From contig VJWM01000182.1 of the NCBI GenBank assembly GCA_010909165.1, positions 310,001 through 374,000 of the forward strand: 64,000 bases of DNA, read 5' to 3'. A model generated the notes under the pieces. That model saw only the letters and a program-made list of their open reading frames with translations, was not told the DNA's origin and searched no databases. The stretch comes from Anthoceros angustus. Taxonomy: Eukaryota; Plantae; Anthocerotophyta. Shown here in pieces: positions 6,068 to 50,553 of this stretch; the first letter of the stretch is position 1; each line of letters begins with the position of its first letter. The position numbers and the translations under genes are program-made.

Positions 6068-9000
6068 AACAACAACAACAACAACAACTTTATTTATGTC
6101 CACTAAGGATGGAAGAACCATCATGGGACAGGGATAGTACAGCATAAAAGAGGTTTAAAAACCGAGTATACTTACGTCGAACTAGAGAAGCAGACTGTAT
6201 GAGGGAAGCAAAAAGAAGGCAAGACTACAAGGAGTCCAACAAGGACCGCCAAGATCAAGAAGCTCGAGAGACATAGTCCAGAGAGCCTAGGAATGTGGAA
6301 AGAAAAAATCAAGAAGCCGCACATTCAAAAGAAGAGAGTAACGAGACCGAATATCGGCATAGGCGGGACAATAAAGAGGAAGTGTGATTGATTCGGGATC
6401 CAAGGAGCAAAGCTTGCATCCTATCGCCTTGGGAGGGGTAGGCTTGAGCCAACGGCCGGTCTCAATCCGAGGTGGTGGGAGCTAACACGAAATTGACCTA
6501 TGAGTGTGCGGAGTTTGAAGGAAAGGGGAACCGAGGTAGCGGGGTAGGAAATTTACGGAGGAGGATTAACTCGGAGCTCGTCTTTGTAAAAGCGGAGTCT
6601 AGAAGTGAGAGGGGAAAAGGAAAGAGGGGACCGTGAGGCGAAGGTATCTTAATTTAAGGGCCTGAATGGAGTGGTTGGGGGATGTGAGAAAGGGGAGTTG
6701 GGAGGAGGAGAGGGCCAAGCGAGTCGAAAAAGGTTCAAACTCGAATCTTCTAAGCTTGGCAGCTTGAGAAAGCCAAAGAAAAGAAGCTTGTGGGTCAAGA
6801 TTGAGCGAGCGAGGAGGACCTAAAGGCAAGGAGGAGGTAAGGGGATCCAAAATGGGATTAGCAATATCAAGGAGGTGGAGGCGGTAAAGAAAGGATGAGA
6901 GACGAAAAAGGCCATCAAGTTCGAGGGAAAAGGCTGCAAATTCGTAAAGGAGGATGGGTAATGGAGTTGAACGCTTACAAGCAATGTGAGCGGAGAAAGG
7001 AAGATTGAACCCTTTCCACCTTCGCCCAAGAAGAAGGGAAAGATCCGGCCCCAAATTTCAGCGCCATACAAGGCGGAGGGAATTACCATAGTGTTGAACA
7101 TGCTCAAGATTGATATCCAAGATTCATCCTCAGATAAAGAACGGCGCAGTACATGAGCCCATCCCTTGGTAGCGGGAGGAGGCGAGGAGGTCCAATTAAA
7201 TTTAGGACCGAAAATAGTGATACCAGATAAGTATAGGATCGAACCATCTCCACCTCGACCATCATAATAAAATTTGCAATCACCCTTGTAATCCCGAGTG
7301 TTGAACCGCATAATCTTGGTCTTGCAGATTGACAAAGAGACCCTTGGTTTTACAAAAAGGGATAAAACATCCAGCTTTTTGCTACTCCGGAATGAGATAA
7401 AAGAACAATATCATCCGCATATAGGAGGATAGGAATACTTTCCAGAAATAGCCGAGCACCAGGGTCGCCAGATCGAAGAAGCCATTCCTCAAGCTCATCA
7501 ATATACAACCCAAAGAGATTTGGGGACAAAGGGTCGCCCTCGCGAACGCCAAGTTGGATAGGGATCTGGTGGGAAGACAAACCACAGGGAGTCTTGATTC
7601 GAGCAAAGACCCTTTTGTAGAGAAGGGTAGCAGCATGCCACAAATGAGGAGGCATCTTAAGAGATTGAAGTCTGTCAAACAACTTATCCCAAGGCACAGA
7701 GTTGAAAGCACGCTTAAAGTCAACAAAACAACGAGACGTGCTTCTTGGATGTCGAGCCCCTTCAACAATAGCCGGAGGGTAAAAGATGATCCAAAGTATT
7801 CGACCGGGCGGAAACCGCTTGGCCCCGAGCACGCACCTTAGCCTCCTCACCAGAAGTAGTCAAGATCTCCAAACTAGAGCTAAAGATCTTAGCATAGATA
7901 GACTCCACGGTGATAAATCGGTAATTAGAAGGGAGATAAGGGTCGCCACTTGAGAATGGAGTGGATATCATTCTCACACCAAGGATCAAACCAAAGACAA
8001 AGCATCATTAAACAGAGAGGCAAGATGCGAGGAGAAGGAGGTAGAGTCAAGAACCGGAATAAATCCCTGTGGATACCATTAGGGTCGATGGTACCACTTG
8101 AGCCCGGATAGCACGGGCAACTAGATTGGCGTGAAAACCCGAGACCGGGATCGAGGAATCGAGGCGGGGAGGCGAGGGATGTGGTAAAGACTATGAACAT
8201 AGGAGAGGAGTTCAGAGTGGCTTTGAGAAGAATGGGTGAGCGGGTGGAATTCCTTCCAAAAGGCGAGCCACCGGGACGCTCAAGCGAGAGATAAGACGGT
8301 GTGTTCACTTGGATGAATTGGGACTTTTCATGGAGATGAAGGCTTTGTAAGGCTTGATGGCTTTGTAAAGAGCGGAATGATGGGATCCGGGAGGAGATTA
8401 AGTTGGCGCAAAGTGAGATGCAATTGAGAGCGCATGCGCTACAATCCGCATCAAACCAGGGATGGCGGGGGTTGGTTTGCACGGGAGGATGGCAAAATTT
8501 GAAAGGAAAAGTGGAGCGGGGCGAGGTTAGAACAGCGGAAGTGGCGGTAGCAAGAAAAGGGAGGTGGGGGAATGGAAGCAAGGAGGAGCGGAGCAAGCTG
8601 GAAAATTGGGGTACAAGGTCTTGTGGAAAGGTGAACTGTGGAGAGAAAGGGAGGGAGGGGATCCCGAGGGGGCGGAGGAACAAAGATCAAAACAATCAAG
8701 AAGATGGTCGACTCCAAACATGTGGAGTCCAGAGTCCGAGCCTAGAAATACGCGAGAGAAGGCCGACGTCACCAATAACATAATCCAACTCGCTAGAAGA
8801 GGAACCATCATCAAGAAAGAATTACTCGTGTCCGCCAACGGGAGTCCGTTGAAAATGACCATGTTGTGGGATTCAGAAGACGAAAAGGGCAACACCATAG
8901 GAATTTAGTGGATGGGTATCGAGGAAGACCGATCGAGCCCGAGGTCGTGATCCTGAGAAATTTTGTCGAAATCAAGGAATCATAGATAGCGACTTGTTGA

Positions 9001-10560
9001 CCGGTCCAAGCGTTGAAGTCCCCAACGAGAAGAATATCGAATAGGGGAAAACTGAGATGGACTCGGAGAGATCCGCATATGGATTACCGCCCTGAGCATA
9101 TTTGGAGGACCTTGGAGGGAAGTAACAGACGCCAACATATAAGTCACGGTGAGAAGAGAAAAGAGCAGAATTAACCCGTGAGGATGAGCTAAGCTCGTCG
9201 TGACGAATAAGGGAGATAAAAGGAGTCAAGGACTCCCGAAAATAGCAAGCAATACCCCCGAAAGCCTTGGGAGAGTTGCTGGAGACATGGTGTCTAAAGG
9301 TAGAAAACATGAATATCCGGAGAACGGCCTAAGGGGCGGTATGATGCTCATGAGTCTCGATAGAAACACAATATCCCGCAATCCCGCCCGTGAGGAGATC
9401 AAGCATTCCGCCAGGTGTAGATTGATAGATCCGCTGCAATTCCAAGAAGCCGGAGGATGCCATCACGGGCCCCGCATCCCTACGGACATGCGCGCCTTGG
9501 GTTCCGTATAACTAGGTCGTCATCAATGAAATAAGCCACCATACCCTCTGATTTTGCCTTCTTACAGTCAAGCAACAATTGCTTCTTGCGTTCCCATTGG
9601 AGAGGAGTAAGGTCAGGGTTTCAAGTTTGTGCGTGCACGTAACACACGCAACCTGTCCTCAAGAGTAAAAAAACGGACAATATAAGTGGGGAATCGAGAA
9701 TGGTCCTTACCCACTCTCCACGCGTGTTGGAACCGAACATCGACCTTGATAACATCAACCAAAAAACCCCTTACAGACTTTCGGAGTAGTTCCGATATCC
9801 TGTAATACGGAGGTTTCGAGATCGCTTATCGCGATCGGGACTCAAATGGTAGCGAATGCGGGCGAAGTTCGCCGCGCCGTGACGGCAAAAGATCGGGTCA
9901 GGGGCAAGGGGCCTATCCGCAATTCTTGAATAACCTCATCATTCTTGGACATGCCAAGACGGATAGAAGTTAATTTGTCTTCAACAATAATTTCAACCTT
10001 CTCCAAAAGGCCGTAGGTCAAACGTGGTAGCCGGAGTAGAGTGTGGAATTGTGGTCAGCTCAACGTGCTTAGAGATCATATTAGCCGCCGTAAATCTTCC
10101 TGTGAGCTCCTTAAGAGATGTCTCAAGATCGATGTCAAGCCATCCATGCGGAAAGTGTCTAGAGAAGTCTGCAATAAGGTGTTCCCATTCTGAAGGCTCA
10201 AAACATCAGCCTGTGTTTGCCGTAATTCATTGAGGAGGGAATCATTGGCTGTATGGAGGGCCTCAAACCTATCAGATAGATCCGAGTGCTTGGCAGAGAG
10301 ATCATCGAGTCTAGCCTCCAAGATAGTAACAGACTCCATGAAAGAAAGTATTTGCCCTCCAAAACGAGAGTCTCCTGCCTCAAGACTATGAACCCTGGAG
10401 AACAGATCTGCCATGTCACATTGCACCTTAGATTCAAGAGAGGACTCTTTAGGGCCATCCGCTGGAGCCATTCCCGCTTGCCAAAATACCGTAGTAGAAC
10501 ACTGAAAGAGAGATTAGCGCGCCATAAGCAGGTTGCCCAATTACCAGACCCTTAGGTGGG
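6068..10560 (-). mobile_element. Decayed near-full-length LINE (ORF1 + APE endonuclease + RT + C-terminal Cys/His region) with (TTG)n 3' tail; clade not determined
   Basis: RT motifs: FVDFKRAFNSV, GVREGDPLSPNLFGLYID, LLYADDIVL. APE fragment: GGIACYFRE..LYVGVCYFPP. C-terminal fragments: FRVSSHHL, CKLCS..HFLFYCPAY. ORF1 has a coiled coil (10076-10471) and DLTPLQWERKKQLL. There are many frameshifts. It ends ...ataaataaag(ttg)n at 6068-6097. The 5' boundary is approximate. Confidence 0.92.
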
Positions 10561-11143
10561 CGGGGCCTGACACGACACAGGGCATGGGCCCCAAGAAGAA
10601 ACCCCTGCATGTAGGACCTAAAAGAAGCCTCGGCCGCCACACCACCGCACCCTAGTACATCGAATCCCGTGCAGCACGGGCACCGCCTGAGAACCAGAAG
10701 GCCCCGACTGTCCGCTCCGCTCTCTACGCACCTCAACCAACTGATCCAGCCCGATAAACATCATTAACCTTGTAAGGAATGGCCCCTCCACACTCGAGTC
10801 CAAACTATCCACGATTTAGTTGCGCGGTTAGGATGCCCGTTGTGGATGCGCGTCAGGCGGACATGAGGGCTTATGGACATGAAATGCCAAGTAGGCGGCC
10901 GTAGGCGGATAGGATCGGGAATTGAGACACAGGCGTCGGCCGATCGAGGGGATCCCGCTGCCCAATTCCATAGCTCAAGCATCTGGACTCGATTCGCCGC
11001 TCAATTCCATAGCTCAAGCATGCAGTCCCGACGAGGTGAGTGTGAAGCGAAGCGAGAACTTTCGAAGCGACGGATGTAGACAACTTCGCCAACGTTGTGC
11101 AGCCGGAAGGAAGTTGCCTCAAGTCCTGATCATACCAGCCCAT

Positions 11144-11670: not shown

Positions 11671-12083
11671 TCCATTGCACACACTCTATTGTGTAACTTA
11701 TCTTTTGAACGCAACTACTCCACTCACAATAGAAAAAGCAAAAAATATAATGTGCTCCAGCAAGCACAAAAGGAAAGATAAATCATAACTAATCTGGTTA
11801 AACTAATCACAAACTATTTCATAAATTCCTAAATTGTAATTACAATTGGCTTCAAAGAAACCCTAAACTCTAATTTCCATACACACACACACACCATCAC
11901 AATTGTTCCGAAGCCCCTCAGGCCCCGGGCTGCTAGCAGGATGAGAGTGCATGTGGAAGAATGGTGGATTGCCAACATGTATGACAGAGGGCAGGGCGCA
12001 AGGAAAATGTGAGAAACATGGGTGCACGTGGTGCGGTCATGCGAAGGCTACTATAAGGTCATACACATATCCAGAACAGCGTC

Positions 12084-13522
12084 TGTGTAGAAAGGGGTTC
12101 TCCTAAAACCCCTTTTGGCACACGGACATGGCCGGACCCCTTTTTGCACTTGAAAAAATCCGCACTATAATCAGCCTTTTTGGTATTTCTCTGCAGACAT
12201 GTCACCCGCAACCTTTTGAATAATTGTTTTAATACACGTTATTTGAGATTGCAGATTGCAAGTACATGGCAAAAACCTAAAGTCCCATTCTCGTTCAGCT
12301 TTTTCTTTCAAACTGGACACAGAATTCATGCGCAAACTTGTGCGCGCACATCTAAGCAGTCTCAACACACACATGATTGCGGTGTTGACTCTCTAAAATG
12401 TTTAGAGTTTTTAGGGCTTGCTGTAATTCTGGTGTGCAAACTTGTTTGCGCACCAACCTTTCATTCATACCAGTCAATCCTCAGACTATACTCTCGCTCT
12501 GGGAATTTTACAGGACTTCTTGACCTTCTTGACCCTTCTTAACCTTGGGTGCGCGCACTTGTGCATGCACCTGGGCCTCCTATGTGTGTCCAAATGGCTT
12601 AGGCCAAATGGACACACATTTATAAGAACGCCGTGATTAAGCATCCTGAGCTTAGATCGGGACTTAGATGGGGTGCCTGAAGGGAGTGGATGCCCTTGGT
12701 GCAAGTAGCTTAGGCACACCATAGTACAAGTTGTTAAGTAACAAGTCCCATGACGGAAATCCGTCCTTAGTGGACTAAAATAAAATTCATCTTCTTCTTC
12801 TTCTCCTTGCCCCCTGGTGCGCGCACAAGTGCGCGCACCTGGGCTGGCCCCCTTGCCCCCTTGTGCGCGCACCTGGGCCCCCTTGCCCCCTGGTGCACGC
12901 ACTTGTTCATCCAGCTGGGCCCCCTTGCATGTTTGATGATAACCCGGCACTAGGTCACCGCCAAAAAAGACGGAAACACCGTAAAGGATAAAAAGGGGAT
13001 AGAGTGTTCTTCGGCGCATTAGGGCATAAGATAGATATATGAGAGCGGTCTCGGTGAACCTCCGCCGATGTCTCCTACTTGTTATTTTGTCGGGAGTTCC
13101 GGCACATCCTCAAACCTCCAAAAGGACATGTTTCCCCATGAGAAGATTATTTTTCGCGTGCTTATTGCACAGTGTGCGCACAAGTTTGCGCATAGCGTTG
13201 TACCAGGTGCGCACTTATGCGCGCCTAGGCCCCCCTGGTATACAAAAACATACAAAACCACACAAAATGCAGAAACTACGGACATGACGAAATTATGGAA
13301 CAATGAGGTCACTGGCCCTTCATCACATCGACTAAATCGCCATGAACCTAAGTACAAGGCGGCAGCGCGGTGTAAATAACTCAGAAAGTGGTGCCGGAGC
13401 CGAGAATGCCCGAAACCGATGAATGAACACCTACAAAAACCAAACCAACTTCAATTTCCGGCGAAATAGGGTTGGGATTTTTTCCAAAACCCCTTTTGAC
13501 AGGAGAAACCCCTTTCTACACA
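12084..13522. mobile_element. Non-autonomous TIR (MITE-like) DNA element with a nested SINE-like insertion
   Basis: Left end is tgtgtagaaaggggttctcct; right end is aggagaaacccctttctacaca (reverse complement, one extra base). Internally there are GC-rich tgcgcgcac/ctgggcccccttgccccc repeats and no transposase motifs. No clear TSD. Confidence 0.7.
12582..12802 (+). mobile_element. SINE-like structured repeat, copy A
   Basis: It runs tgtgtccaaatggcttaggccaaatggacac...gtcccatgacggaaatccgtccttagtggac-AATAAA-(TTC)n with TSD ctcct at 12577-12581 and 12803-12807. Removing it restores the host repeat unit cacctgggcctccttgccccctggtgc. Confidence 0.85.
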
Positions 13523-15086: not shown

Positions 15087-15111
15087 TTGTGACCTAAACA
15101 TGTTCACAATA

Positions 15112-15600: not shown

Positions 15601-15649
15601 GTGGGCATCGTCCGGACGGGGCTCATCTATCAAGTATTAAACAAAGACC

Positions 15650-17239: not shown

Positions 17240-18070
17240 TCAGAACCACGTCTGGAAGGACCAAGAGTAGACGAAATTGTCCTCCGTGGCAAAGCCGCTG
17301 GCAGCCGTGAATCCCACATACGAGCTCGGGTTGATGATGCTTGCCAAATCGAGAGACTCGTAGGAGAAGAGATGCGTTGCCTGGGATTTGTGGGCGGGTT
17401 CCTTAGCGGCAGACGCAACCAATTCATGCCTTCGAGCGTCGTAATCCACCCAGACGGTCACCTTCTGCGGATCGACACCCTCTACGACGATACCGTCGGC
17501 AGTCGCCGAGACAACGGACACGATGCTGTTGACATCCAGCCCGAAGTGGGGAACTGCGGGGTCGTTGAAATCCCCATTCTGGTAGGTGTCGATCTCCAGC
17601 GCAACCGTCTTGATAGCGGGGTCCCCGTTGGCATACACCGTGGGGTCGAAGATCCCCAAGTACTCCCCTTGACTGGATATGGCGGCAGCGGGTGTGGGCT
17701 TGATCACAAACGCCAGCCCGTCGCCGGTGTTTGCCAAATTCTCCGTCGTGATGGCAAATGTGAAGCTGGTGCTGAAGGAGGCGGGCTTCTTGGTGGAGGG
17801 GTCGACGAAGGCCACGGGCTTGGTTCGGAACGCACCTCCCGCGCTGTCTTGGGTGGGGTTTGGGCCCAGCAGCCCAACGTAGGAGCCGTTGTCCGCGTAG
17901 TACGCACTCTCGCTCAACGTGATGCCCGACTGCGCGTTCCACTGGCCGATGCTGAAGCTCACAATTGGAGGTTGAAGGAGCCGGCCCGTCGCCGCGCTGG
18001 AGACAACGGAAAGGAGCAGAGCAAGAAGCACACAATGGAGCGACCAGGTGGAGGTCGAGGAGGAAGCCAT
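17240..18070 (-). CDS. Secreted L-type (legume) lectin, copy L4, intact, intronless
   Basis: ATG at 18070 gives 276 aa. It has a signal peptide (MASSSTSTWSLHCVLLALLLSVVSSAATG) and the motifs GDGLAF, VALEIDTYQNGDFNDP..PHFGLDVNS and YVGFTAASG. It ends VYSWSFQTWF*. Confidence 0.95.
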   Translation of the reverse strand: MASSSTSTWSLHCVLLALLLSVVSSAATGRLLQPPIVSFSIGQWNAQSGITLSESAYYADNGSYVGLLGPNPTQDSAGGAFRTKPVAFVDPSTKKPASFSTSFTFAITTENLANTGDGLAFVIKPTPAAAISSQGEYLGIFDPTVYANGDPAIKTVALEIDTYQNGDFNDPAVPHFGLDVNSIVSVVSATADGIVVEGVDPQKVTVWVDYDARRHELVASAAKEPAHKSQATHLFSYESLDLASIINPSSYVGFTAASGFATEDNFVYSWSFQTWF

Positions 18071-18699: not shown

Positions 18700-20050
18700 A
18701 ACTTTAGATGTGATTCATCGTATTCGAAGTTGTGGCCAGAAAGGAGCATCTCATGTACACTGTAAAACACAACAAATCCATCATTCCATTCTGATTATGT
18801 ATCTCACTTATGATAAGATGTGGATCACTTGTCCCAGTGTGGACAGGGCTCGGTCAAAAACCTGGCGTGCATCTTCCAGTTCACAGCATTTGGCATACTT
18901 GTCCACCAGGCAGGTGCCAGCATTACGTTACCCAGCAGTCCTCTTTCCACAGTCAATGAATGCAGCTGCCTGCCCTTCTGTGAGGCACTAGTACTGGCTT
19001 GCACAGGCCTTCAGAAGCAAGCAAAAGTAACGTGGTTAGCAAAACTCCGCCCCTCCTGCTCCTTTCCACAGACTGTGAGTGCCCCTGCCTGCTCTTCTTA
19101 AGGCACTAGTACTTGCCCAGGCCTCAGAAGGCAAGCAAAAGCAGCAACATGGTTAGCCAAGATCTGCCCCTCCTGCACCATTTGTCCATACAGAACAAGT
19201 GCCTCATGTCCGAGCCCTTGCTCGACATACCCAGCTATCAGGGTGTCACCACATTTTTTGTGTTCGAGCTCTCAAAAACCTGGCATGCATCTTCCCCAGT
19301 TCCCCACACTTTGCACACCCAGGTATCAGGGCATTCATTCCTTGTCACCAACTCCGTGGTGGCCATGCTGTCAAAAAAAGCTGGCATGCATCTTCAGTTC
19401 GCCGCATTTTTCATACGTGTCCACCAGGCAGTTGCCAACAAACAAGTCAGGAGGAATCCCACTCTGCGCCACATCGCAGTCCACTTTTCTGCCAGATTCC
19501 AAGTCGGCAGCACATGCACAAGCTAGAATGGCATACAAAAAGACGTGAGCATCCACCTTCACTCCTGACCTACGCCCATCTCATGTTATAGTTGTATGAC
19601 CTCCTTACGTTTCCCACGCTTAGCCTACGCAGAAATTCATGGAAAACCACATTGAGGCATCTGATTCGCCCACCCTGGTGAACACATCCATGGCCCCCTG
19701 CAGAATACCTCCACATGCATCCATGCGCAAGATATGGTTCCCCAAGTATGAGCCCGCTCGTAGCCAAGTTGATTGACAGTGACTGCATGAACTCGTCGCC
19801 CCACAACAAGATCCTCCGTATCTCCACCCTGTTTTAGCACAGTGGAAAAACAGAGACTGAGAAATAGCAGTCAGTGTCCGCCAGACTCCAGGGCTCCAAC
19901 GGTCTCAGAAAGCTTCCCCTGCTGACATAACATGCTCACGATTCCAGCCCTCACGACGGCCATTGCCGATCCCCCACGCTTGCCAGGTTCACGCTTAGCC
20001 GGAGAGCTCGACTAGGAAGGAGAGGCACCATGAGTCATGGTGCCTCTCCT
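18700..20050 (-). pseudogene. PLS-class PPR pseudogene
   Basis: Fragments read MLCQQGKLSETVGALE, DLVVGRRVHAV, AILACACAADLESGRKV..VAQSGIPPDLFVGNCLVDTYEKCG and GLGHEALVLYGQM. There are many stops and frameshifts. Confidence 0.88.
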
Positions 20051-21048
20051 GCTCCAGCTCAAACCCCTCATGGTCCATATCCAAGGAAACCAGCTAAGGT
20101 TTCCTCATCAACCAAAGCTGGCTTAACCACAGAACTTGGCAGGACCCCTTAAGCCAGATCTCGCCTGTTGTCCCACCTCAAGGTAGGGTAGGAAAAAATT
20201 GTTGCCACAAGTGCTCCTTTCCTGCACTCGTGGCCATCATGTAAATCGCGTTGGCCAATCAATACATCAATATGTATCTAGTTCTTATATATATATATAT
20301 ATATATTTTATTCATTGATAATTCTTTTTATTAATATTATAGGATAACTATTCACTTGAATTGAGTGAACCCTAATGAGAACTCACTTAGGGTGATAAAA
20401 GGGTGCTTACATAATGAGTGAATAACTAATCCATAGAGGAACCTAGCAGTTAAGTAACCCACACTAGAATTTAGATCGGGTGCTTGTTTTACATTCAAAC
20501 TTCATATATTTTCCTCTTTTTGTCAGATAACCATTCATTATAATTATGTGAACCCTCACTAGAAATACAAATGTTCATAATAGATGCATGGAACGAGTGA
20601 ACCTGTTCACTCAAGTATTGCCCTTGCAAGTGCTCTTTGGAGGACAATAGCTCAACACCGTTCGTGGGAACATGATATGTTGGCTTTAGTGCAAGACTTG
20701 ATAAATTTATCAAAATCCTTAGTCAACGCCCCATAGAACTTCCTGTAGGATGTTTGAAGGATGACTATTAAGGTAAATCCATAGATTTTTTCTTCTCTTA
20801 ATGAATATAAATAAAATAATTCATAGGTATTGGATAACTATTAGATCCTTATAGAGAACCTAATAGTTAAGCCATTCTCACTAGAATTTGGATGAAGCAC
20901 TTGATGTTTCACATTTGAACTTCCTATATTTTCCTCTTATTGTTGGATAACATTCACTTTGATTAAATATACACTCACTAGAAGTGAGAGAGAGTGTTTA
21001 AAGGGTGATTATTTAAACTTCACAGATTTCTCTCTTTTGATTTCTCTC

Positions 21049-21251
21049 AAAGTGTGTCTAAATGGCCTAGGCCAAATGGACACACATTTATAAGCCGTGA
21101 TTAAACATCATGAGCTTGGATTCGGTACTTAGATAGGATGCTTAAAGAGAGTGGATGTAGCTTAGACACACCATGGTACAAGTTGTTAATACCAAGTCCA
21201 TGACGGAAATCCGTCCTTAGTGGACTTAAATAAAATTCTTCTTCTTCTTCA
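21049..21251 (+). mobile_element. SINE-like structured repeat, copy B
   Basis: Same head, body and 3' motif as copy A with a short internal deletion, a (TTC)n tail, and TSD ttctctc at 21042-21048 and 21252-21258. Confidence 0.85.
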
Positions 21252-21412
21252 TTCTCTCCTTCGCGTTTAAATACACTTCCTTCTTACTTCTCCATAAGTG
21301 GAGGACCGCAAAATATAAATTTGAGGAAGAGAACCGCGCGGTACTAGCCGGCGACCCTGCAGGGCTGTGTGCTTTTTGAACACAAAGTTATGCAGTTATG
21401 CAGACATGGTGG

Positions 21413-22286
21413 ATAAGGGAAGGTGTGAGCATCAGAAAAAGGTCTTGAAGGAGCAAGACCAGCTGGGAATCCCCATACCCATGCGAGAGAGAGCGGGTCG
21501 ATGATGCTCGTCAAATCGAGGAGAAGAGACGCTGTGCCTGATGAAAACTTCGCCACCAACCGTCAATTTCTTTGCTTTCAAATTCAAATACGATTCAGCG
21601 GATTCTGCTTAGCTCAAGACTGGGATTACGTTTACGTGGATCTGGGAAGCAGCTACGAGTCCTGCCAAGCAGGACACGCGGCCAGGCCACTTGGCATCAC
21701 AGGACCCACTTCCGGACCGCGTGGTGCCCGCTCAGGGGCCAGCAGAATGGAGCGGAGCAGAGCAGAGCAGAGCAGAGAACAGGAGGCCTGCATCACCCCA
21801 TTCCTCCTTCTTGGAGTGTCAATGGCGGAAGGAGGGAAGGAAGTAATAAGGAAGGTGTGAGCATCAGAAAAAGGTCTTGAAGGAGCAAGACCAGCTGGGA
21901 ATCCCATACCCATGCGAGAGAGAGCGGGTCGATGATGCTCGTCAAATCGAGGAGAAGAGACGCTGTGCCTGATGAAAACTTCGCCACCAACCGTCAATTT
22001 CTTTGCTTTCAAATTCAAATACGATTCAGCGGATTCTGCTTAGCTCAAGACTGGGATTACGTTTACGTGGATCTGGGAAGCAGCTACGAGTCCTGCCAAG
22101 CAGGACACGCGGCCAGGCCACTTGGCATCACAGGACCCACTTCCGGACCGCGTGGTGCCCGCTCAGGGGCCAGCAGAATGGAGCGGAGCAGAGCAGAGCA
22201 GAGCAGAGAACAGGAGGCCTGCATCACCCCATTCCTCCCTTCTTGGAGTGTCAATGGCGGAAGGAGGGAAGGAAGTAATAAGGAAG
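21413..22286. repeat. Near-identical ~432-bp tandem duplication containing a lectin C-terminal fragment (minus strand) and the upstream region of the next gene
   Basis: The two copies are offset by 431-432 bp, with the junction microhomology ataag(g)gaag at 21413, 21846 and 22278. The minus strand reads LLLDLTSIIDPLS..GF, matching lectin LDLASIINPSSYVGF. Confidence 0.92.
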
Positions 22287-22383
22287 CAAGGTAGGAAAAG
22301 GCTGTTGGAAGCATCACTTGGCTCGGCTTCTGAATCAATGGTCCAGGAGGACTGTACAGATCCAAACTAGTGCTGGACTGACG

Positions 22384-36626: not shown

Positions 36627-37934
36627 ATGGAGAGGCCGCGGGGCCACCTCACTTCCTTCTTGCTCCTGCCTCTGCTTCTGCTGCTGCTGCTGCTGAGTGC
36701 GGGGATAGTGCAGGGGCAGCCTCCCCCGGCGGCTCCTCCCTTCAACGCGAGCACGCCCCTGGACCCGGCCCAGGTGGACACCTTGCAGGCGCTGGGGGTG
36801 ACGGTGACGGGGAATCCGTGCGTGACGCAGACGGACATTGTGGGCTGCGACCAAAGCACGCCGGTGAGGCATGTGACGCGGCTGTTGCTGAAGCTGTGCA
36901 CGCAGGGCGTGCCCAAGACGACCGCCGACGATCTCCGGAGCCTCTACACTCTCAAGGACCTCACCTTCCAGAACTGCCCCTTCCGGGACTTCCCCGTGCC
37001 AGCGGAGCTGCTCAGCTCCGTCACCAGCCTCAAGGTGTCTGCGAGCCTGGGCCGCACCATCAGCGATGGCGTCACTGTGCCCGGGCTCCCGGGAACGTGG
37101 CTGGCAAAGTGGTACAATCTGGTGGCGCTGGATGTGGAGGACGTGCTGGTGAACGCCTCCTCGCTGAGCATCATCGTGAACAACATGACCCACGCGGAGA
37201 ACATCAAGTTCTCCAGCACGGGGCTGGGCGGGGACCTGTCCACCGTTTTCTGGCCGACCAACCTCACCAGGCTTGACCTCTCCGCCAACCTCGTCAATGG
37301 CAGCATCCCGGCGGCTCTGGGCGGGCGGACCAAGCTCAACACCGTCGACCTTAGCGATAACAGGATCAGTGGTGTGCTCCCGGATCCGCTCGGGGAGCTC
37401 TTCCTGCTCCAGACCCTGGCGGTGGCCAACAACTTCCTCACCGGGAACTTCCCGCCCAGCTTCGCCAACCTCACCAGCCTCCAAGTGCTGGATACCAGCG
37501 GGAACCAGCTCAACGGCAGCCTGCCGGCGTTCCTCAACCAGCTCCCGAATCTGCGGTCCCTGGACGTGCGCAACAACAGCTTCAGCGGGCCGCTGCCCTT
37601 CAACTCCACCGTCATCGCCGGGTTATCGCTGCAGACGGATGGGAACCCGGAGCTCTGCTACAACTCCACCCTCTTGTCGGCCACGCCTGTGGGCGGGCTG
37701 CAGCCGTGCGGGCCGGACGGCCTGCCGCCGCTCTCCTCGCCCTCGGGCTTCCTCGGCCCTACTTCGGCTCCGGCTCCCGGGCCCTTGCCCGCCAGCGGAG
37801 CTTCGCACCACAAGAAGAAGAAGGGTCCTAAGATCATCGTGGTGGCTGTGGCCACCTCCCTGGCCGCCATTATCATCATAATCGTGGCCATCATCTGCGT
37901 CTCCAGATGGTGTGCTGCCAAGGATTACGAGTGA
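36627..37934 (+). CDS. LRR receptor-like protein, SNC2/RLP51/RLP55 type, single exon
   Basis: 435 aa with a signal peptide, PLDPAQ..L..L...NPC, LRRs, LPFNST....GNPELCYN, a Pro-rich stalk, KKKKGPK followed by a TM helix, and a short tail SRWCAAKDYE. The architecture matches my recollection of Arabidopsis SNC2/RLP51. Confidence 0.9.
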   Translation: MERPRGHLTSFLLLPLLLLLLLLSAGIVQGQPPPAAPPFNASTPLDPAQVDTLQALGVTVTGNPCVTQTDIVGCDQSTPVRHVTRLLLKLCTQGVPKTTADDLRSLYTLKDLTFQNCPFRDFPVPAELLSSVTSLKVSASLGRTISDGVTVPGLPGTWLAKWYNLVALDVEDVLVNASSLSIIVNNMTHAENIKFSSTGLGGDLSTVFWPTNLTRLDLSANLVNGSIPAALGGRTKLNTVDLSDNRISGVLPDPLGELFLLQTLAVANNFLTGNFPPSFANLTSLQVLDTSGNQLNGSLPAFLNQLPNLRSLDVRNNSFSGPLPFNSTVIAGLSLQTDGNPELCYNSTLLSATPVGGLQPCGPDGLPPLSSPSGFLGPTSAPAPGPLPASGASHHKKKKGPKIIVVAVATSLAAIIIIIVAIICVSRWCAAKDYE

Positions 37935-38699: not shown

Positions 38700-41668
38700 T
38701 CAAGGGACTTTCTTCTCCACCTTTGCTTGCCGGATAGGCGCCTTTGATTCCTCAGGGATAAGCCCTATCAATGTGATAGGGACCAAAGCAGCCATGGCTT
38801 GAATAAAAATCCCCAGAGGTAAGTAGGTGAAGCTGTTGGCGGAAATCTGTAGGTAGGAAGCAAGGGCTACTCCCAGGTATGCACTGAAGGTGTTGGCCAG
38901 GCAATGAGCTGACATAAAAAATGCAAACAAGGATCCCTCACTTCCAGCAGGGCATAGCTTCGCCAACAGTACCAGAAAAGGCAGCACCTTGAATTGTGCT
39001 ATGGCCTCCACGAATGCGCTCACCCCCAGGACAAACAATTCGTCCTTGATACCCAGTAGGAGGTTGACACGAGTGACCAAAAGAAAATCCGATAGCATAC
39101 AGAAACCGAGAAGACCCTGCACACATCCGACTACTCTGCGCAGTGGCAACTGTTTCAAGTAACGGTTGAAAAGAACACTCCCACCCATCAGGCCCAGCTG
39201 CCCCACGACCTTCTGCAGCCCAAGATACGCTGGATCGATATGCAGCTGTTGTGTTTGGAAGAAAAACAGGCTGCTACCAAGAGCCGGAATCATGGCATAC
39301 GAAGCTACGAACCATAAAATCGGCCTCAAGATTGCTGGCCTTCTTATTAGCTCCACCAACATGGTGTACTGCTGTGCCATCATCCCAAAGGCACTAGGTC
39401 GATCCAGAATGTCGACTTTTCCCAAAGTCGACAGTTCACAATTGCGTACAGGATCTATATAATCATCGCCCTGTTCTTTCACTCCACCTGCTGCCTGTAA
39501 TGCCAGCCTTGGACTACCCTCCATGCTACGATCCCCAACCTTTTCAGAACTGGACTCAGCTGCATCATCTTCTCCTACTAACCTGGCGGAGTCGTCTGCG
39601 CTCTCTATTTTACCGATGGTGATCTTGCTTTTCCGTTGCAGATTGGGCAAAAAACGCAACGCATTGCTTTTCAACGACACAAAACTCTTCCTCGGTGTCG
39701 TGGAAGATGCACCAGCAACATCCAACATCCCCAAGCCACCTAGTCCAAACGATCGCTCGCTAATTGTGCAGCAAACTAGAAGCTGAGCAGTTACCATGAG
39801 CAAGAAGATGGAAAACATTGTGTGGCAATCCATCCTCCTCAACGCCAGGCCGCCACATAGACTTCCTAAAACGCCCCCCGTCGCTAAGGCAGTCCAGGCT
39901 AAGGATTGCAGCTCACCTGCGCTGTTCTGGTCTTTTTTCCCAGCTTCTGCAACAAGTGCATCGTTCATCACTTCAGCAATTGCTGCCCCCATGTTGCTCA
40001 ATGCGAGGAGTACGGTCAACATCCCTAACGAGCTGGTTGCTCCAGGATGAGCGATGATAGCTCCCCATGACAAAACTTGCAGAGATGCTGCAAAGTATCA
40101 CCAGCAGAGTAGGTTAGCAGCTTATGGCACCTTCAACAAATACATGCATTCGCGGTTCAAGAATCCTGAAAATGGCTTGGCTTACCTGCTATGATCAAGT
40201 AAGGAACCCTGTGTGAGCCTCCAATGTAGAAGGCATCCGACAATATTCCATAAATTGGTTTCGCAACCATTGGCAAACTTGCAGAAGATAGAACGAATTG
40301 CATGGTGGCCGGATCCACCTGAAGGCCATCTTTGAACAGAAAGGACACAGCTAGCCATGGAAAACTTCGAAACCCTTGAATCCAGTAACCCATCACCAGC
40401 AGCCCCATAAAAGAAGCTCCGTAAGTCTTCTTCATGCGATTTAACCACGACACAAAGCCCATGTCGTCTGTATTTGTGGCCGCCAAAAGTTCAGATGCTG
40501 AAACTTGTGGGACAAACCTTCTACGATAAAGCAGCTTGGACAATCGCTCTGTGAGAAAGAATGTCCTGCATCCTTGCAGTACCTGCAGGTTGGTTGACTG
40601 TACTAGTGATGTCTGTCTGCTTGAGTTCAGTAAGGGGCTCTGGGGAACTCTGAACTTGCACTCTGCAAGCAAATGAGAAAACCGGAGGTTGCACAACCAT
40701 AACCAGGATCTTACCCCGCCAGACTGCAATGTCTTCGGAGTACTCACTAGCTTGGGCTCACTCAGGGCATGCAATGTGAGCACATTCGCTCTGTCAGCCA
40801 ACCATCTTTTGCACCACACCAAAAATGCTCTTGATCTGAAAGAAGCCTCCCTGCTCAGACCTTGCAATGCTAGCGAAACCTTCAGCAAGCAAACGGAAAG
40901 CTTGCTAGTAGAATGATCGCATCCCAAAGGCTGCAATTCTTTCAAGTTCACTGCTGGGAGGGTGGTAACTTGTGCATCGGAGCGTTGGTTGCTGACATGG
41001 CCCTTCAATGATCTGTACACTTTTCTCCCGATGTCTAGAGACCTGTAAGATGCTTCTGGTAAAAGACATGAATATTGAAGTAGCTGCCATCCTACCAAAG
41101 TGGGAAGAAGGCCAGATAAAAAGACATGCACGAACCAGAATTCCCTTGGGCCCCCAGTGAAAAGGTCATCCAAGCCCTGGGTGGTAGCAATGCAAGATGT
41201 CCTCAGTGCTGCCAAAGGTGTGCAGATACCCTCCAACCCCGCAAATTCGGTGCTCAGACCGCGAATATATTCAAAGTCATCGGCAGAGGCAAACACGCCA
41301 TGTCTCCCCGCCCTTGCAGCTAGAACACGATGTTTACAGTTGTCGCCAGCAATCCTAAACCGGCTCAAATCCTGTGACGCCAAAGATTTTTCTCCTCGAT
41401 CTACACGAGAAAGTTCTCGCCAACCTCTTGCTCCTCTTGAACAGCAGCTTTGCTGCCAGGTTGGTACCGTCGTCCTCAAGGCACCTCGAGGGAGGCTGCA
41501 ACAATGTGTTGCACAGGTATTACAAAACCGACCTTCAAGGCATACACTACTTCTCCTACCAAAATTCGGGAGGCGTGCTAATGGATCATCATGCGCATGA
41601 CAGTGAGCAGAAGAAAGTCGCGTACATGTCGCACCTACAATGGACTGCAGAGCAGGCAGACTTGCCAT
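38700..41668 (-). CDS. Folate-biopterin transporter (BT1/MFS), FBT8/9-like, probably plastid; 5' end uncertain
   Basis: Motifs GYWIQGFRSFPWLAV..LPMVAKPIYGILSDAFYIGGSHRVPY, AIAEVMNDALVAE, GELQSLAW and LAKLCPAGSEGSLFAFFMS. There is an intron near 40.08-40.18 kb and a long open N-terminal frame from ATG 41668. Confidence 0.88.
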
Positions 41669-43706
41669 CCACCTCCGTTTAAGACAAAATCCAGAAGTTT
41701 GACCCTGGACACACTCTCGGAAGAAGGTTACTCCTCCTTCCTCGGAGGAAGCTGCAGACAGAAACACGCGGCTTAGCGAATCACACAAATCGCAAAGCGT
41801 AGGTCAGCAGAATGAGCGGCCTGTGCTTGCAAAGAGCTTGGTTCAAACTCGATTCTGTCCCGTGAAGCGCTGCATCCATGAGAAGAATTATTCACCGTAC
41901 CCTGCTGCTCCTCTTTCGCAGGCAAAAGACATCATCCAGACGGACACTCGGCCTCTCTAACGACGTCTCCTCACAACCACAGCACAGCCAGACGTGATGC
42001 TGACACAACGTTTGCAATTGGCCTACGAGGCGCGGCCAAAATCCTAGAACGACAACTTCTACAGGGATCTCAACCTCCAACCGCATACCCTGACAGGCAA
42101 GAAATCCCTGACAATTGCGCATTCCACCTGCGTCCTCAGCGGGGGAAGCGGAATTTCACAACCCGACTCTCAGACCCCTGCCTGCTCTCTCTTTTTCCGG
42201 GACGCATACGCACATGCAAACCTGCCTGCTTGTGAAGACACTGGAGAGACGGTAGCGCATTCTTCGTTGGAACTCGGGGGCAAGAATGGCGGTGTGAGCA
42301 AATTTGAGACGGGCCAGGTGAGCAGTCAAAGGGTATGAATGAGCAGCAGCGGTACCTCCCGCCAATGACATCCAGCCGACTTCCTAGGGCATCGCGTCAT
42401 TCCAGCATACCAACTCCAGTGGGGTGTGCACACGCCGGTGAGGCGGCAGGTAGGAAAAAATCGGGAGCGGGCAGGTGTGCCCGGCGGGAATGAGCTCGGG
42501 GGGCTTGGGGACGCCGGATGGAAGGAGAAGGAGGCGACACCTGATGCGATGCTGCTGCGCGCGGAGAGGAAGCGCGACGCGCAACAAAAAAATCGCGCAG
42601 GCCAGCCTCCCGGCTCGAGTCAGACAATGGCAGCGCATGCAATGTGCTGGTCTCGCGCGCTCCAGCCTCCAACCTCCAGCTGCGGGCTGCAGGCCGGGCG
42701 GTGGCATCAGCCCACGTGGACCTCTGGCCTCGTCGCTATGCGTTTTTTAGTCACTGCCTAACTCACGTAGTCTAGGCTAGGTAGGTTTAGTGATGATTCC
42801 GCTCACGTAGAGCTGGCCCTCTTTCCAATGTTACGTTACATTTGAGCACTATCATCTCAAAATAAACTCCGATTTTCATACATAGGCAAACCCTAACCCC
42901 ACCCTTAGACCTTTCACTCGAGCTTCGAGGCATGCATGCCTGCTCTGGACAACATCAGATGCGGTGTGGCAGCAAGTCTTTCTCTCCACGGCTTCCTGCT
43001 TCCTGTGGGGCTTGGTCTTTTAGAGGGATTCGTGACGGATGGGATGTGTGTTCCTTGGGGTCTGGAGCCTGGTGGATGCTTGGGGCTGGAAGCAGCCACG
43101 ACTGCTGGAGAGACTTTGAGGTTCTGTGCACGGGTGTGCAAATAGAGGACTTCAGCCTGCAGGAGGTATTATGCGCAACTTATCTGCCCAGGAAGGGCCT
43201 GTGAATAAGTGAAGAAATCGGAGACGGTCTTGCAAGAGTGCTGTGGATGATTTAACATCACCCGGCTGCCGTGGAGTCACGAATCTGTTGCCGAACTGTC
43301 GCAAATCTTGCGTGCGAGGGCAGCAATCGGCATGCTCTGTCCTTGACGGAGTACGCATTGTTGTCCAGGGATCTCGATGGGTCCATACGGTCGAGCTCGC
43401 CCCGGGAGGCGAACGGACGAAGCAGCTTGAAGTTCAGGAAGCATTCATGACGTTTCGCAAATGGAGGCCTACGGCTTCTTGTGGGCCTTGTTGGGAAGGA
43501 GGCCAAGTCCATTCCCTGGTGGATACTAGGATCTGGAATCCTTAGTCACGAAGCACTGTGCAATGGGGAATAGAGGACTCCTGCAACAAGTGTGCGCGGC
43601 ACCTCATTTATAATAACAGCTGGAGTGGAGTGAGAGGAGTCACGAATTTCTTAACCATTCAGAATTTCTTAACCATCGAGAATTCCTTCCGAAGTAGTCA
43701 TGCTAC

Positions 43707-44787: not shown

Positions 44788-44887
<100 letters not shown>

Positions 44888-45514
44888 CATAAACTGCACA
44901 CTTACTATCTATAGTTGTTATCACTATACGTATTATCTCCCTGCTTGTTAAATTTCTCAATATATAGGCTATCACTCAATCTTAATCTTTTTTCTAGTGG
45001 AGGAGAAACTAAGAACGATATTTGGAGTTACTTTGGATCGAAGTTATACTACGTTGAGATTAGTGGTGTTTGAGGCTTGCTTAAAATTTAAGAAAACCTC
45101 TAGATTAATTAAGAAAGCAATTTTTTAGGGCTTAAGAAAGCTTCCCTATATCATGGGTGAGCTAGCCTTAGAAAGGGAATACTTCCTGCACATTTTTGCT
45201 TAGAAGGATACACGTCTCAGAGGTTGTGGAAGCGTAGAGTGACTTGTGAGGTTGGAAGAGAGATTGGGATATAAAATAGCATTAAGTAATGCTAGAGCAT
45301 AAGTTCATATGGAGATAAAATATGGTCCCAATACTCTTTGATATCTCTCTTGTACTCTTAAGCTTTTTTATTCATATTAAAGAGCAGCAACAAGGGGTGG
45401 TCTGCGAGTCATCCTAGGGTCAACAATGGGCTACTTGGAGGTGCTGTAGTAGAGCCCAAGTGCGTATGCAGATGCATATGGCCCCAACATGAGTGTCCGT
45501 TGTTCATCTTTACA

Positions 45515-45665
45515 TTGTCTAGGTGATCTTCTTCAAACTTAATTATAGTGTCCATTGCTCATCGTTAGGTTGTGTAGGTGATCTTCTTCAAACTCAATTA
45601 TAGTGTCCATTGCTCATCGTTAGATTGTCCTAGTGATCATCTTCATACTTCACTTTAATGTCCAT
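45515..45665. repeat. ~55-bp tandem repeat x~2.5
   Basis: taggtgatcttcttcaaact(t/c)aattatagtgtccattgctcatcgttag is repeated. Confidence 0.85.
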
Positions 45666-46080
45666 TATTTCTGTATGATCTCCTGGATGCTTATCTTTAG
45701 ATTGTTTTCAGTAATTAGTTAAGAGTGTAATTAAGAATTTAACTTAGACTTTAATTAAGAGGCCTTGGAAATGATAGGACATAAAGCCCTCAGTTTGGAA
45801 CATGCTTTGCACTAGGAAATCATTGCATCATGCTACGTCCGCTGGCTAGGATCAACTATTAACAGTGACTAGTTTTGTGCCTTTACGATTAGGCGAGACC
45901 CCAACAAGTTGGGGGTCTCTAACCGTTTCGCAGTCTGGAGATACTTGATTACGAGGTACAAAATTCTTCGTTATTTCACTCAAGATATATCCGCCCTTCC
46001 CACACTGCACCTTGCGTGCGAATCCACGTTAGAAAGGAGAGAGGGGGAACCATGGTTTCACACAAGAAGAAGCAACAGCG

Positions 46081-49000
46081 TCACTGGTTAATCTGAATTC
46101 CGAGTCTTAAAGCGGTAAGCATTGCCTGACCAGCAAAGGCAAAATCGGGATGGCGCATTAAAACTAGTTCGACTGAAAGTCCAACTCCATCGTCACTTTG
46201 TAGCAGGGGCAGTGTCTCCTCAAAAGTACCCCCAACGTCTCCGGCACCTGTATCTCCGTAACAGCGAGCGGAAGCAAGACAAAGGGCGGTACCTTGCAAG
46301 AATTGCAAATGGTGCTCGTCACTCCACCCCTCATCTTCAGATACCTGCCGCATTGTAGCCCAGTCATCTTGATCAGCAGCCCAAACCCACGCACTTTCCA
46401 GAAGGCTCTTATTTCCTCTCCTGAAAGCTTCTCCAGCTAGGGCAAAAACATCAAACACACTGATCACAAGTTCCTTGCATTTGTGTTTAAGGCAAGCTTC
46501 TATGAGTTGCCTTGCAGAGAGGACTTCATCACCAACAATGCCAGCTTCAACGGCTCTGGCCTGAACATCAAGTATCCCAATGTCAGCATCCAGACGTGCC
46601 AGTTTCTCCTCTGCTTCACGGCCTTCGGTCGAGGCTGCCAAAGCAGAGAGCTTAGCAAGGTACAACAAATGCATCCTATCTTCCAGTTTCCATGATTCCA
46701 AAGTCTCATCCGGAGAGTCATGCATTGCATCTTCACCCACAGGACAGACCTTCGTATTCGATAGAGCCAGAGAGTGAAGAACAGATGACGCAGAGCCCAG
46801 GCTTTCCAGAAACAAATCATGTAACCAGGCTAGATCTCTGTGCTCATGAAGAAAGAATTTCAATTCCTCCTGAAACTCTTCACCTAAGATAAGAAGCCTT
46901 GCGTACTGTTCCTTCCCATAATATTGCTCGAACACATAGTGACAAAAACTACCTTCCTTTGACCCCATGCTCTCACGCATCAAGCTTCGCAGTTGGTCGC
47001 CATCATTTAGATCTGAGCAAATGTCAAAAAGTGTTTGATACCCTGCATGGCGTTGTGCCAGTGCCATGAGAGAAGGGTAGATCTCCTCCAGCACAACACT
47101 TCTCTGATGCTCATTGTGGTCAGAGGTGGCCATTTCCTTGGCTTGCTGGTACAAAGCATTGAGAACAACATCTCTCTTCATGCCATATTCACTTTGTAAT
47201 CCTCTGTGTTCTTCGCCTCTCTCTATTTTTGCTTTCATGGCACCTGAATACCCCTCAAGCATCATATCCGAGACTTCCTCTAACCTGGTAGCTAGCACTT
47301 GCGTCAATTCAGGATGAGAGGTTGCTATCTCTGACTTCAACTCCATAACAAGAGCAGCCAACTTCCATAGACCTGAGCGGATTGTCGCACTGCAATACCA
47401 GGGAGTTAGACCTTCTGGAGACGGGTACCAAAGCTGCTGAGAATCTCTGTATCGGATTGCAGCTCGAAGTGACATTGAACAAGCATCAGCAAGCTCACAC
47501 AGTCTCTGAGCTCGCTGAAGGGAGGGATACTCCAGTCCGATTATCGATTCGCCATGGTGATCTATGCATGCAAAAAACTCTTCCAAGTCCGAGACCCGAG
47601 AGTAAAAGACCTCTGCCTTTTCCCGGTTCATAAGCACTGCATAAGTCCTTCGTAACTTTTCTCCCACCAGCTGAACAGTATCCCAAAGTGCTCCAACGAG
47701 CTCACCGCCCGCCTGGGACTGTGTGTACATATCTCCAGTCTCCGTGGCACGAAATGGATGCCGCCCCTGAGCTCGAGAGTTGTGCAATTCCCTGAGCTTC
47801 ATCATGGCAGCAAGCTTCTCTCCATGTTCCAGAATAGTCTGCAACGCCTCCCTTTGCCTCTGCTGGAGCTCCTCGTGACACCCAGAAGACACTAGGAAGT
47901 TCAGATACTGTTGATGCTGCCGCTGCTTCTCAGCAAACTGAGACGACACAATGGATGTACCTGCATCCCCACCTCTGGTCCAGTGCTTCCCAAGTGTATC
48001 CACGATGGCCTTGCTCGTTCTTGCAAACACGTTCACGTCCCCTTCCCTATCAAAAGCCCTTGCCCTCTGCAGCTTAGCAAGAGCATTCTCCACTAGGCCA
48101 GACGACGTGAACTGCTGCAACAGCTGGGCTACTATCTCTTCAGTCTCCTCATCCCGCACAGGACGCTGAGCCACGGCCTTCGGCAACTTCAGATCTCTGT
48201 TATCAGCCACAGGCCCGCTCTCCGAGCTAACCCTGCGCAGAGCAATGCTCCCGAACGTCTGCTTCCTCCTCTCCTCATTCGCAGTCTCTTCATTGGAGCT
48301 GCCCCTTCGAGACAGGTTCCTTTGCGGAGGCTCCACCCCACCCAACAGCACAACCTTCTCCGGAATCACCCACACCCCAGCCTTCTCCGTCAGCACAACC
48401 CAAGACCCCTCATCCCCATCCTCCAAAGGACGAACAACAGACGCATCCAGCACCTTCCCCACATCCCACGGCACATCAAACTGATACAGTCTCAGGCTCC
48501 CATTCCTCGCAGAATGGGCCACCGTCGCCGTCCCATCCCCTGCCAGAATCACCGCCGACCCAGCAGGCTTCCCCCCAGTCCGCAGCCGCATGGAGTACAA
48601 AAAATCCTCCTCCTCCACTCTAGCCTTGGGCAAGATAACCTGCATGGCCGCCTTCTTCTCCACAGGAGCCACCACCCCATGCCCACCCGACCCCCCAGTC
48701 CCATGCAACAAAAACGTAAGCAACGAATACTGCATGTAATTCGAATTGTTGTTCCTATCCTTCAAATACGACGCCACCAAAACCGTAAACTCCTTCCCCG
48801 CCTGGTCCACCTGCAAATCCAGCAACCACACCTGCTTCTGCCCTGCAAACTCCTTCTGCACAGAGTCCCTAACCTTGTCGCTCCCAGCATTGTCCACAAT
48901 AAAATCATGCGACCAAGCCGCAGTCACACTCCCGCCCCGCCAGCTCCACATCCCAACACTCCACCCCTTAGCCGTGAGCAGCAGGAGCTGCCGCGACCCC

Positions 49001-49981
49001 TCTCCAGCCACAACATCCGGCGTCCGCCACGCCAAACACCGCATCGAGGAGCTGTTGAGGGAGATAATCCCTAACCCCGCCCTCGTCATCTCATCCACAC
49101 TCCGCACAATTCTCTGCCGGGTCACCTCCTGCGGGCTGCAATTCAACCTGTACAGCTCCCCCCCGGCCCTCCCCGCGATGGCCACGCAGCTCCTCCCCCC
49201 GGCCCCGGGCACGGCCGACGCCGCCAAACCCTTGACGAGGTTATGCTCCCTGGACCCTGCCCCCCCGCTCCAGGACGCGGCCGGCCTCCTGGCAGCCGCG
49301 GCGCTGGGCTCCGCGTCCCCGCCCTGCTGCGCGGCGGAGGCCACCACCACCGCCGGGCAGTACCCGTCCCTGAAGGCCTGCGGCCAGTACGCCACGGCCA
49401 GAGTCTTCTGGTTGCAGAGCAGCACGCTGACGCTGGGAACACCCTCCTGCTGCCCCCCAGCCGCAGGTCCTGCTCCTGCTCCTGCTCCACCAGGCACACC
49501 AGCCACTGATCGGCATGCTTGTCCGAGAACCCCAGCTCGGCCGGCACGGTGAGCACGGCGCAGTCCGGGGCGCCTGGCCCCCAGATGGCTCCACACGAAC
49601 ACGCGCTCCGCCTGCAGCAGCCACGAGGCCCAGGCGGGCGTCCATCCCTCCCGCACGCCCAGCTGCCGCTCCGCATGGCTGCGCACCTGCCGGGGAAGTC
49701 GCACACCAGCGCCGGCTGGCTGCCGTCGGAGCCTTCAGATTGGCGCCGCCGCCTCTCGAGTGCTGCGCCGCCCACGGGGTGCAGGGCGTCGAGGGCAGGG
49801 CTGCGCCATAGCCCGCCGCGGCCCGGTCGGGAGAAGGCCGCACTGGAGCGGGCGGAGTGGTAGGAGGAAGCGCACCTCCTGCTGCTCCTGCTGCTGCAGC
49901 TGCGGATGCCGATGCCTGGAGTCTGGCATCCCGTCCCCTCCCTGGCCCGCCCAGGAGCTTCGCCTTTGCGGGAGAAAACAT
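46081..49981 (-). CDS. NUP133: Nucleoporin Nup133; apparently intronless; several frameshifts in the GC-rich 5' ~550 nt
   Basis: It starts MFSPAK (ATG 49981). Motifs include GGMD, RVFVWSH, LCNQKTLAVAYW, ILPKARVEEEDFLYSMRLRTGGKP.GSAVILAGDGTAT, LYQFDVPWDVGKVLDASV and YRDSQQLWYPSPEGLTPWYC. Confidence 0.93.
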
Positions 49982-50340
49982 CCGCCTGATCTGCCTGCCT
50001 GCCCTATCGACCCTGCCATATCACTCCCATCGCTTCTTGCTCGCCCAGCAGTTTGAATGCCGCGCAGGCGGAAAGGAAGCCTCTTCCTCTTCCAAATTGC
50101 ATCACGAAAACATAGGGGTGAGTACATTATAGAAACCAATAGTGTCATACAATGTAACCTTATACAATATAACCTTTATCTTAGTATGGGAAGAATATGT
50201 TCTCTGAGTGTTGAACCCGTGCCTGCTGGCTAGAAGGCAGTAATCCTATCCTGTATACTCCAAACCCCGATTCATAAACCTTTCTTCATCCTCTCCCTAC
50301 TTGATCCAGAGTCTTTTGCCTAAGGGAGTGAGTTCACCTA

Positions 50341-50553
50341 ATGTGGGTCCAAATGGTTTAAGCCAAATGGACATATAACAGCGCCGTGATTAAGCATCCT
50401 GAGCTTAGATCAGTACTTAGATGGGGTGCCTAAAGGGAGTGGATGCCCTTGGTACAAGTAGCTTAGGCACACCATGGTATAAGTTGTTAAGTACCAAGTC
50501 CCATGACGGAAATCCGTCCTTAGTGGACTTCAATAAAATTCTTCTTCTTCTTC
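50341..50553 (+). mobile_element. SINE-like structured repeat, copy C
   Basis: Highly similar to copy A from gtccaaatgg to ccttagtggac-AATAAA-(TTC)n. No clear TSD. Confidence 0.85.

Follow-up and report, generated by a model that had tools for sequence, protein, structure and literature searches.

A short retroposon family with a LINE-type hairpin tail and a possible 5S rRNA-like head in land-plant DNA

Three short repeats in a stretch of DNA of 64 kb, hereafter the window (the whole stretch that was analysed), end much as a dead long interspersed nuclear element (LINE) in the same stretch ends. The locus raises the question of whether these repeats are copies of a short interspersed nuclear element (SINE), and, if they are, which LINE moves them and where their head came from. 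A preliminary description, made from the sequence alone, had proposed that repeats and LINE form a SINE/LINE pair with a common 3' stem-loop. Our reading, to which we assign a probability of roughly 75%, is that all three repeats represent a single SINE whose tail belongs to a non-L1 LINE lineage of the stringent type, whose head is 5S-like, and whose cognate LINE is a sister of the dead copy. A SINE with a LINE-type hairpin tail is a known kind of system, and as a transposon family this one behaves in the ordinary way; of greater interest is the 5S-like head, whose support is no more than moderate.

The features of the SINE copies and of their insertion sites are as follows.

12582..12802, + strand: SINE copy A, 221 bp, sitting within a 30-bp tandem repeat (nhmmer E value 3e-83)
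21049..21251, + strand: SINE copy B, 203 bp, with an internal deletion of 13 nt; the oldest copy and the most diverged
50341..50554, + strand: SINE copy C, 214 bp, which lies ~640 bp upstream of a Nup133-like open reading frame (ORF)
12582..12619, + strand: 5'-terminal inverted repeat of copy A, a hairpin with an 11-bp stem (reverse-strand self matches and fold of the whole copy)
12786..12802 (A), ~21236-21251 (B) and ~50539-50554 (C), + strand: (TTC)n terminal repeat
12577..12581, + strand: 5' target-site duplication (TSD) of copy A, CTCCT, with its 3' partner at 12803-12807
21042-21048 and 21252-21258, + strand: candidate TSD of copy B, TTCTCTC, 7 bp, from flank comparison

The three copies had been placed at these start positions in the preliminary description, and both pairwise comparison and a profile hidden Markov model (HMM) of the copies bore this out: the same three were the sole matches in the window, with E values from 3e-83 to 6e-68. 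The copies are short (203-221 bp), non-coding and dispersed, with fixed 5' and 3' ends, as SINE copies should be. Identity is 90% between A and C, 83% between A and B, and 81% between B and C. All three start at the same base, with A/T-GTGKGTC at 12582, 21049 and 50341, and their upstream flanks show no mutual similarity. A common 5' base with unrelated flanks upstream argues against 5'-truncated LINE fragments; the ragged 5' ends named earlier as the mark of such fragments are not what we see among the three copies of the window. The 3' ends agree equally well, each copy carrying AATAAAATTC and then 5 to 8 TTC units, just as an ending in AATAAA and (TTC)n had been described.

Two copies were said to have TSDs, and two do. 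For copy A (5 bp) we rebuilt the empty site by removing 12582-12802 together with one CTCCT and joining the flanks, which reproduced the neighbouring 30-bp unit at 39 of 43 positions; because the rebuilt junction matches the next repeat unit, the boundaries of the copy and its 5-bp duplication are independently fixed. The duplication of copy B (7 bp) is the weaker of the two. Both duplications are CT-rich, as is the SINE tail. When the open reverse frame of copy A was used for a protein word search, no match came back, and a scan of a metagenome collection for the tail motif returned nine chance matches and no SINE. The common 5' end and the insertion sites of copies A and B support the view that the repeats are a discrete, short, non-coding retroposon and not ragged LINE fragments.

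The tail domains of the SINE copies and the parts of the resident LINE lie as follows.

12745..12784 (A), 21196-21234 (B) and 50498-50537 (C), + strand: tail domain of the SINE copies
6089..6129, - strand: 3' tail domain of the LINE (HMM match, alignment and fold)
6068..6088, - strand: terminal repeat of the LINE, (GTT)7, which is (AAC)7 on the + strand
6130..9462, - strand: body of the dead LINE, 5' limit not fixed, with many frameshifts and stops
7353-7859, - strand: reverse transcriptase (RT) of the LINE, RVT_1 with E value 7e-17
6290-6481, - strand: C-terminal CxxC piece of the LINE, motif read by eye and not confirmed by Pfam
8814-9083, - strand: piece of the LINE with an endonuclease-like GDFN motif, read by eye and not confirmed by Pfam
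10079-10513: possible coiled-coil ORF1 of the LINE

In the SINE, the tail consists of an outer stem, an inner 5-bp stem (GACGG/CCGUC), the loop AAAU, a 3-nt spacer and AAUAAA; the LINE has the same outer stem, the inner stem GAUGG/CCAUC, the loop UUCUU, a spacer and AAUAAA. The match between the terminal motif of the repeat and the LINE 3' end, already described, was confirmed in three ways. Four occurrences of the 12-mer TCCTTAGTGGAC, where 0.34 are expected, were counted in the window: one in each SINE copy and one at 6098-6109 (- strand). An HMM made from the SINE copies only matched the LINE 3' end at 6080-6131 (- strand) with an E value of 3.1e-5. Finally, alignment gave a common block that runs from GTCCC through the nested hairpin and the 3-nt spacer to AATAAA. 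The SINE thus has its 3' end in common with a LINE, by HMM (E 3e-5) and by alignment. Upstream of GTCCC the alignment showed no resemblance, and the earlier statement that the rest of the repeat is unlike the 3' untranslated region (UTR) of the LINE holds, since nothing is alike beyond the last ~50 nt.

The hairpin of the SINE copies folds at -13 to -16.8 kcal/mol (z -3.1 to -4.9 against shuffles) and that of the LINE at -11.4 kcal/mol (z -1.7). Their stems are identical except for one inner pair, where the SINE has C:G and the LINE U:A, and all 10 predicted stem pairs are standard in every sequence. Any two SINE copies are 95% identical in the tail, against 71-94% elsewhere in the element; in the body, copy B is 71-73% identical to A and C. 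This suggests that the source copies kept their tail unchanged, and it would fit selection on the tail there. Taken together, these data support the assignment of the last ~45 nt of the SINE to the same type of hairpin-bearing tail as that of the resident LINE. A covariance model of the tail, run on the window with filters off, returned the four known tails and one marginal match; Rfam at its gathering thresholds returned no match in the window. The marginal match, at 20777-20815 (+ strand; 15.5 bits, E 0.085), has AATAAA at its end and lies some 230 bp upstream of copy B; it could be what is left of a decayed retroposon end, or a chance match.

What kind of LINE this is was judged from its RT. 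The nearest solved RTs are those of R2 (1e-13) and, well behind, L1 ORF2p (2e-4), and from this comparison we conclude that the resident LINE is of a non-L1 type. Of the LINE pieces submitted to Pfam, RVT_1 alone was confirmed, and a protein atlas search with the LINE gave no clade assignment. The proteins closest to the RT piece are from ferns, at no more than 46% identity, so that the source genome and its close kin lie outside the collection searched. Self-comparison of the window revealed no second LINE copy.

The head of the SINE was compared with 5S rRNA, and two copies contain a stretch that resembles it.

12622..12672, + strand: 5S-like stretch of copy A, 33/51 identical, ungapped, p 0.0015
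50375..50425, + strand: 5S-like stretch of copy C, 33/51 identical, same register, p 0.0005

With a permissive local alignment, positions 41-91 of the SINE align over 51 nt without gaps to positions 37-87 of plant 5S rRNA (locus L079), 33 of the 51 being identical. The aligned block spans box A (9/15), the intermediate element (3/6) and the start of box C (9/18). In 2000 dinucleotide shuffles the p-values were 0.0005-0.0015 for copies A and C; four of 6000 random genomic segments scored as high against 5S, and the consensus of the three copies scored 17 where single copies scored 15. The first base of the SINE falls within 4 nt of the 5S +1 position (offset +4 nt in copy A and -2 nt in copy C), as is found in the 5S-derived SINE3 elements. 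The plant references were L019, L030 and L079, confirmed by Rfam at 113-115 bits, and only these three were used of 86 5S loci that a conserved-motif scan of genome contigs had yielded and that are eukaryotic 5S rDNA contaminating bacterial assemblies. The same motif scan of viral contigs gave four chance matches and no 5S gene. Loci L014-L093 are eukaryotic 5S rDNA, often in tandem arrays, in many assemblies of bacterial isolates and metagenome-assembled genomes, evidently as host or sample contamination; beyond the three plant-type references, some of these loci may be of animal or human origin. A tRNA-derived head was considered for the SINE and rejected, there being no tRNA-like match. A run of ARAGORN on the whole window gave no tRNA gene at all, although three SINE copies and a LINE lie in it, and this is at odds with any general rule that the LINE/SINE system inserts beside tRNA genes. 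From these alignments a 5S origin of the head is suggestive only; we would put it a little above an even chance.

The window holds a second and stronger 5S-like stretch at 593-641 (- strand), aligned to positions 40-89 of plant 5S; under strict scoring it reaches 34, where the best shuffle reached 29 (p < 0.0005). This stretch is not part of the SINE family. Rfam gives no match to it, its surroundings show neither a hairpin nor a microsatellite tail, and it lies directly downstream of the ORF at 725-1492 (- strand). It may be a relic 5S pseudogene or some other 5S-derived element.

A number of observations weigh against the reading of the repeats as a SINE with a 5S-like head and a sister LINE as its partner. 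The family is known here from three copies, and one LINE 3' end could be compared with them. The duplication of copy B looks like the tail repeat, which makes it weaker evidence, and the flanks of copy C contain no duplication of 5 bp or more. The 5S alignment loses its significance when scored more strictly, and copy B does not pass the shuffle test. The Rfam 5S model, allowed E values up to 10, did not match copy C or the head of copy A; nhmmer between SINE and 5S found no match in either direction, and neither a tRNA-like head nor any other Rfam small-RNA head was found in the SINE (ARAGORN, Rfam). With promoter evidence so weak and a tail of LINE type, the repeats might be no RNA polymerase III SINEs at all, but pieces of another LINE family that ends in (TTC)n, either its 3'-terminal fragments or derivatives that arose by internal deletion. 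We regard this as very improbable: the 5' end is identical in all three copies and the insertion boundaries of copy A are exact, there is no coding similarity and nothing like the resident LINE 3' UTR outside the shared tail, and the 5S-like block is as far from the 5' end as a type 1 promoter would have to be. The differences between the two tails also have to be counted here. The loop is UUCUU in the LINE and AAAU in the SINE, the spacer sequence differs too, and the terminal repeat is (GTT)7 in the LINE and (TTC)n in the SINE, so that neither the same loop nor the same terminal repeat, both expected of a cognate pair, is found. One could still take the dead LINE or its family for the donor of the enzyme, with loop and tail repeat irrelevant to recognition, given that both stems are identical save one compensated pair and that spacer length and AAUAAA are identical. 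The stringent LINEs that have been studied, in zebrafish, recognize the 3' stem generally and the loop specifically (PMC4176376), and this, together with the different tail repeat, makes such a donor distinctly unlikely. Because loop, spacer and terminal repeat all differ from those of the SINE, the resident copy probably belongs to a sister lineage rather than being the partner; the most likely cognate is a sister LINE in which the inner pair is C:G, the loop AAAU and the terminal repeat (TTC)n. The proposed pair therefore stands in that the SINE carries a LINE-type tail, and falls in that this LINE is an unlikely cognate.

The exchanged base pair calls for similar caution. It had been described as a compensatory change that keeps the hairpin, and the pair is real, with all 10 pairs kept; the compensation, however, is a single event, and both of its substitutions are CpG transitions (CG to TG and CG to CA), the commonest class of mutation. 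The covariation test comprised four sequences in three distinct rows, and because shuffled controls reached the observed value in 175 of 500 trials, covariation is not established from the window. It is therefore conceivable that the SINE reading is right while the U:A pair of the LINE is mere drift, through two independent CpG deaminations in a dead and methylated copy. The copy is indeed dead, with its frameshifts and stops, and by our own reasoning, since the CpG in one arm of the stem faces a CpG in the other, half of the outcomes in which both have decayed would look compensatory. Yet the observed/expected CpG ratio of the LINE is 0.80-0.86 with no excess of TG/CA, and so light a decay leaves drift possible but not favoured, with a chance of roughly 1-2% by a hand estimate. 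A second hand estimate, of the chance that two substitutions among the 27 non-loop positions fall on one of the 10 pairs and stay complementary, gives about 1%. Loop, spacer and tail repeat differ as well, which points to a separate lineage rather than to one decayed copy. We consider drift unlikely on these grounds and keep to the reading of a SINE whose tail comes from a sister LINE lineage.

How would such a SINE move? It would be a non-coding RNA of 205-220 nt that is copied back into the genome by the RT of a LINE. RNA polymerase III would make this RNA from an internal promoter in the 5S-like stretch, at positions ~41-91, and the ORF2 protein of a stringent-type LINE would bind the tail hairpin. 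The (UUC)n end may then pair with the nicked, CT-rich target and so prime reverse transcription. Priming of this kind would fit the two TSDs, because both are CT-rich like the tail, although these are only two cases. In the work on UnaL2 of the eel, terminal repeats reportedly matter too.

The remaining features of the window are host genes and local duplications.

36627-37934, + strand: gene for a leucine-rich repeat protein
38700-41788, - strand: BT1 folate-biopterin transporter, in two ORF pieces with a short gap at 40074-40156
46081-49704, - strand: Nup133-like nucleoporin ORF, 1207 aa
54667-56823, - strand: ORF with an RPAP3 C-terminal domain

For the BT1 ORF at 38700-40073 (- strand), the best named relatives come from mosses, ferns and a lycophyte (44-63% identity), and by this similarity and that of the RT piece to fern proteins the host is a seedless land plant. 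At 21413-22286 (+ strand) a 431-bp unit is present as a tandem duplicate with 99% identity, directly downstream of copy B and upstream of the ORF at 22318-23712. The stretches 755-1510, 4945-5724 and 17255-17962 are paralogous (69-73% DNA identity) and overlap long ORFs, and so form a local gene family; further shared pieces pair 3756-4063 with 19688-19991 and 4119-4303 with 19062-19243.

Pairs of a SINE and a LINE with a common structured 3' end are well known in animals. The two tail lineages of this window, C:G/AAAU/(TTC)n and U:A/UUCUU/(GTT)n, could serve as a natural experiment on what the enzyme recognises in the tail. The family resembles the stringent pairs, UnaL2/UnaSINE1 of the eel and ZfL2 of the zebrafish (PMC4176376), in that the SINE tail copies the LINE 3' hairpin, after which come a short spacer and a simple repeat, and in that stems are kept and loops vary between lineages. 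It differs from them in being in a land plant, in its trinucleotide repeat and in the AAUAAA between hairpin and repeat; the LINE differs here from the SINE in loop and repeat, and recognition of the tail is a prediction. In flowering plants only three SINE/LINE pairs with a common 3' end have been counted, among them the tobacco TS SINE with RTE-1_STu and maize ZmSINE2/3 with LINE1-1_ZM (PMC3472496). As in the tobacco and maize pairs (PMC3472496), a plant SINE has a LINE-derived 3' end with a stable RNA structure; here, in contrast, the plant is seedless, the LINE RT is nearer to the R2 type than to L1, and the head is not tRNA-like.

For the head, the nearest comparison is SINE3, the 5S rRNA-derived SINEs of fish, mammals, reptiles, insects and fungi (PMC10946416, PMC10886601, PMC5063351). 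SINE3 and Ajax have retained the promoter region, and their upstream part has diverged (PMC10886601). The present SINE is like SINE3 in that its tentative 5S similarity is limited to the internal promoter with the upstream part diverged, that it starts near the 5S +1 position and that its tail is LINE-derived; it differs in its low identity, ~65% over 51 nt, undetected by the Rfam 5S model or nhmmer. According to a 2024 review no 5S-derived SINE is known in plants (PMC10946416), and the 5S-like head, if genuine, fills this gap. Cassandra elements, terminal-repeat retrotransposons in miniature of plants with long terminal repeats (LTRs) and a 5S promoter module (PMC10853983), are likewise plant mobile elements, and the present SINE, too, may carry a 5S promoter core. 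Unlike Cassandra, the SINE has no LTRs, primer-binding site or polypurine tract and ends in a LINE hairpin and a microsatellite; a Cassandra solo LTR was rejected as its identity, no LTR features being present. A genuine 5S-like head would also bear on the idea that the 5S module of Cassandra came from a SINE3 insertion (PMC10886601). We therefore propose, tentatively and at slightly less than even odds, that this is the first 5S-derived SINE (SINE3) of a land plant, mobilised by a stringent non-L1 LINE lineage through a conserved nested hairpin and a trinucleotide tail, and a living example of the proposed source of the Cassandra 5S module.

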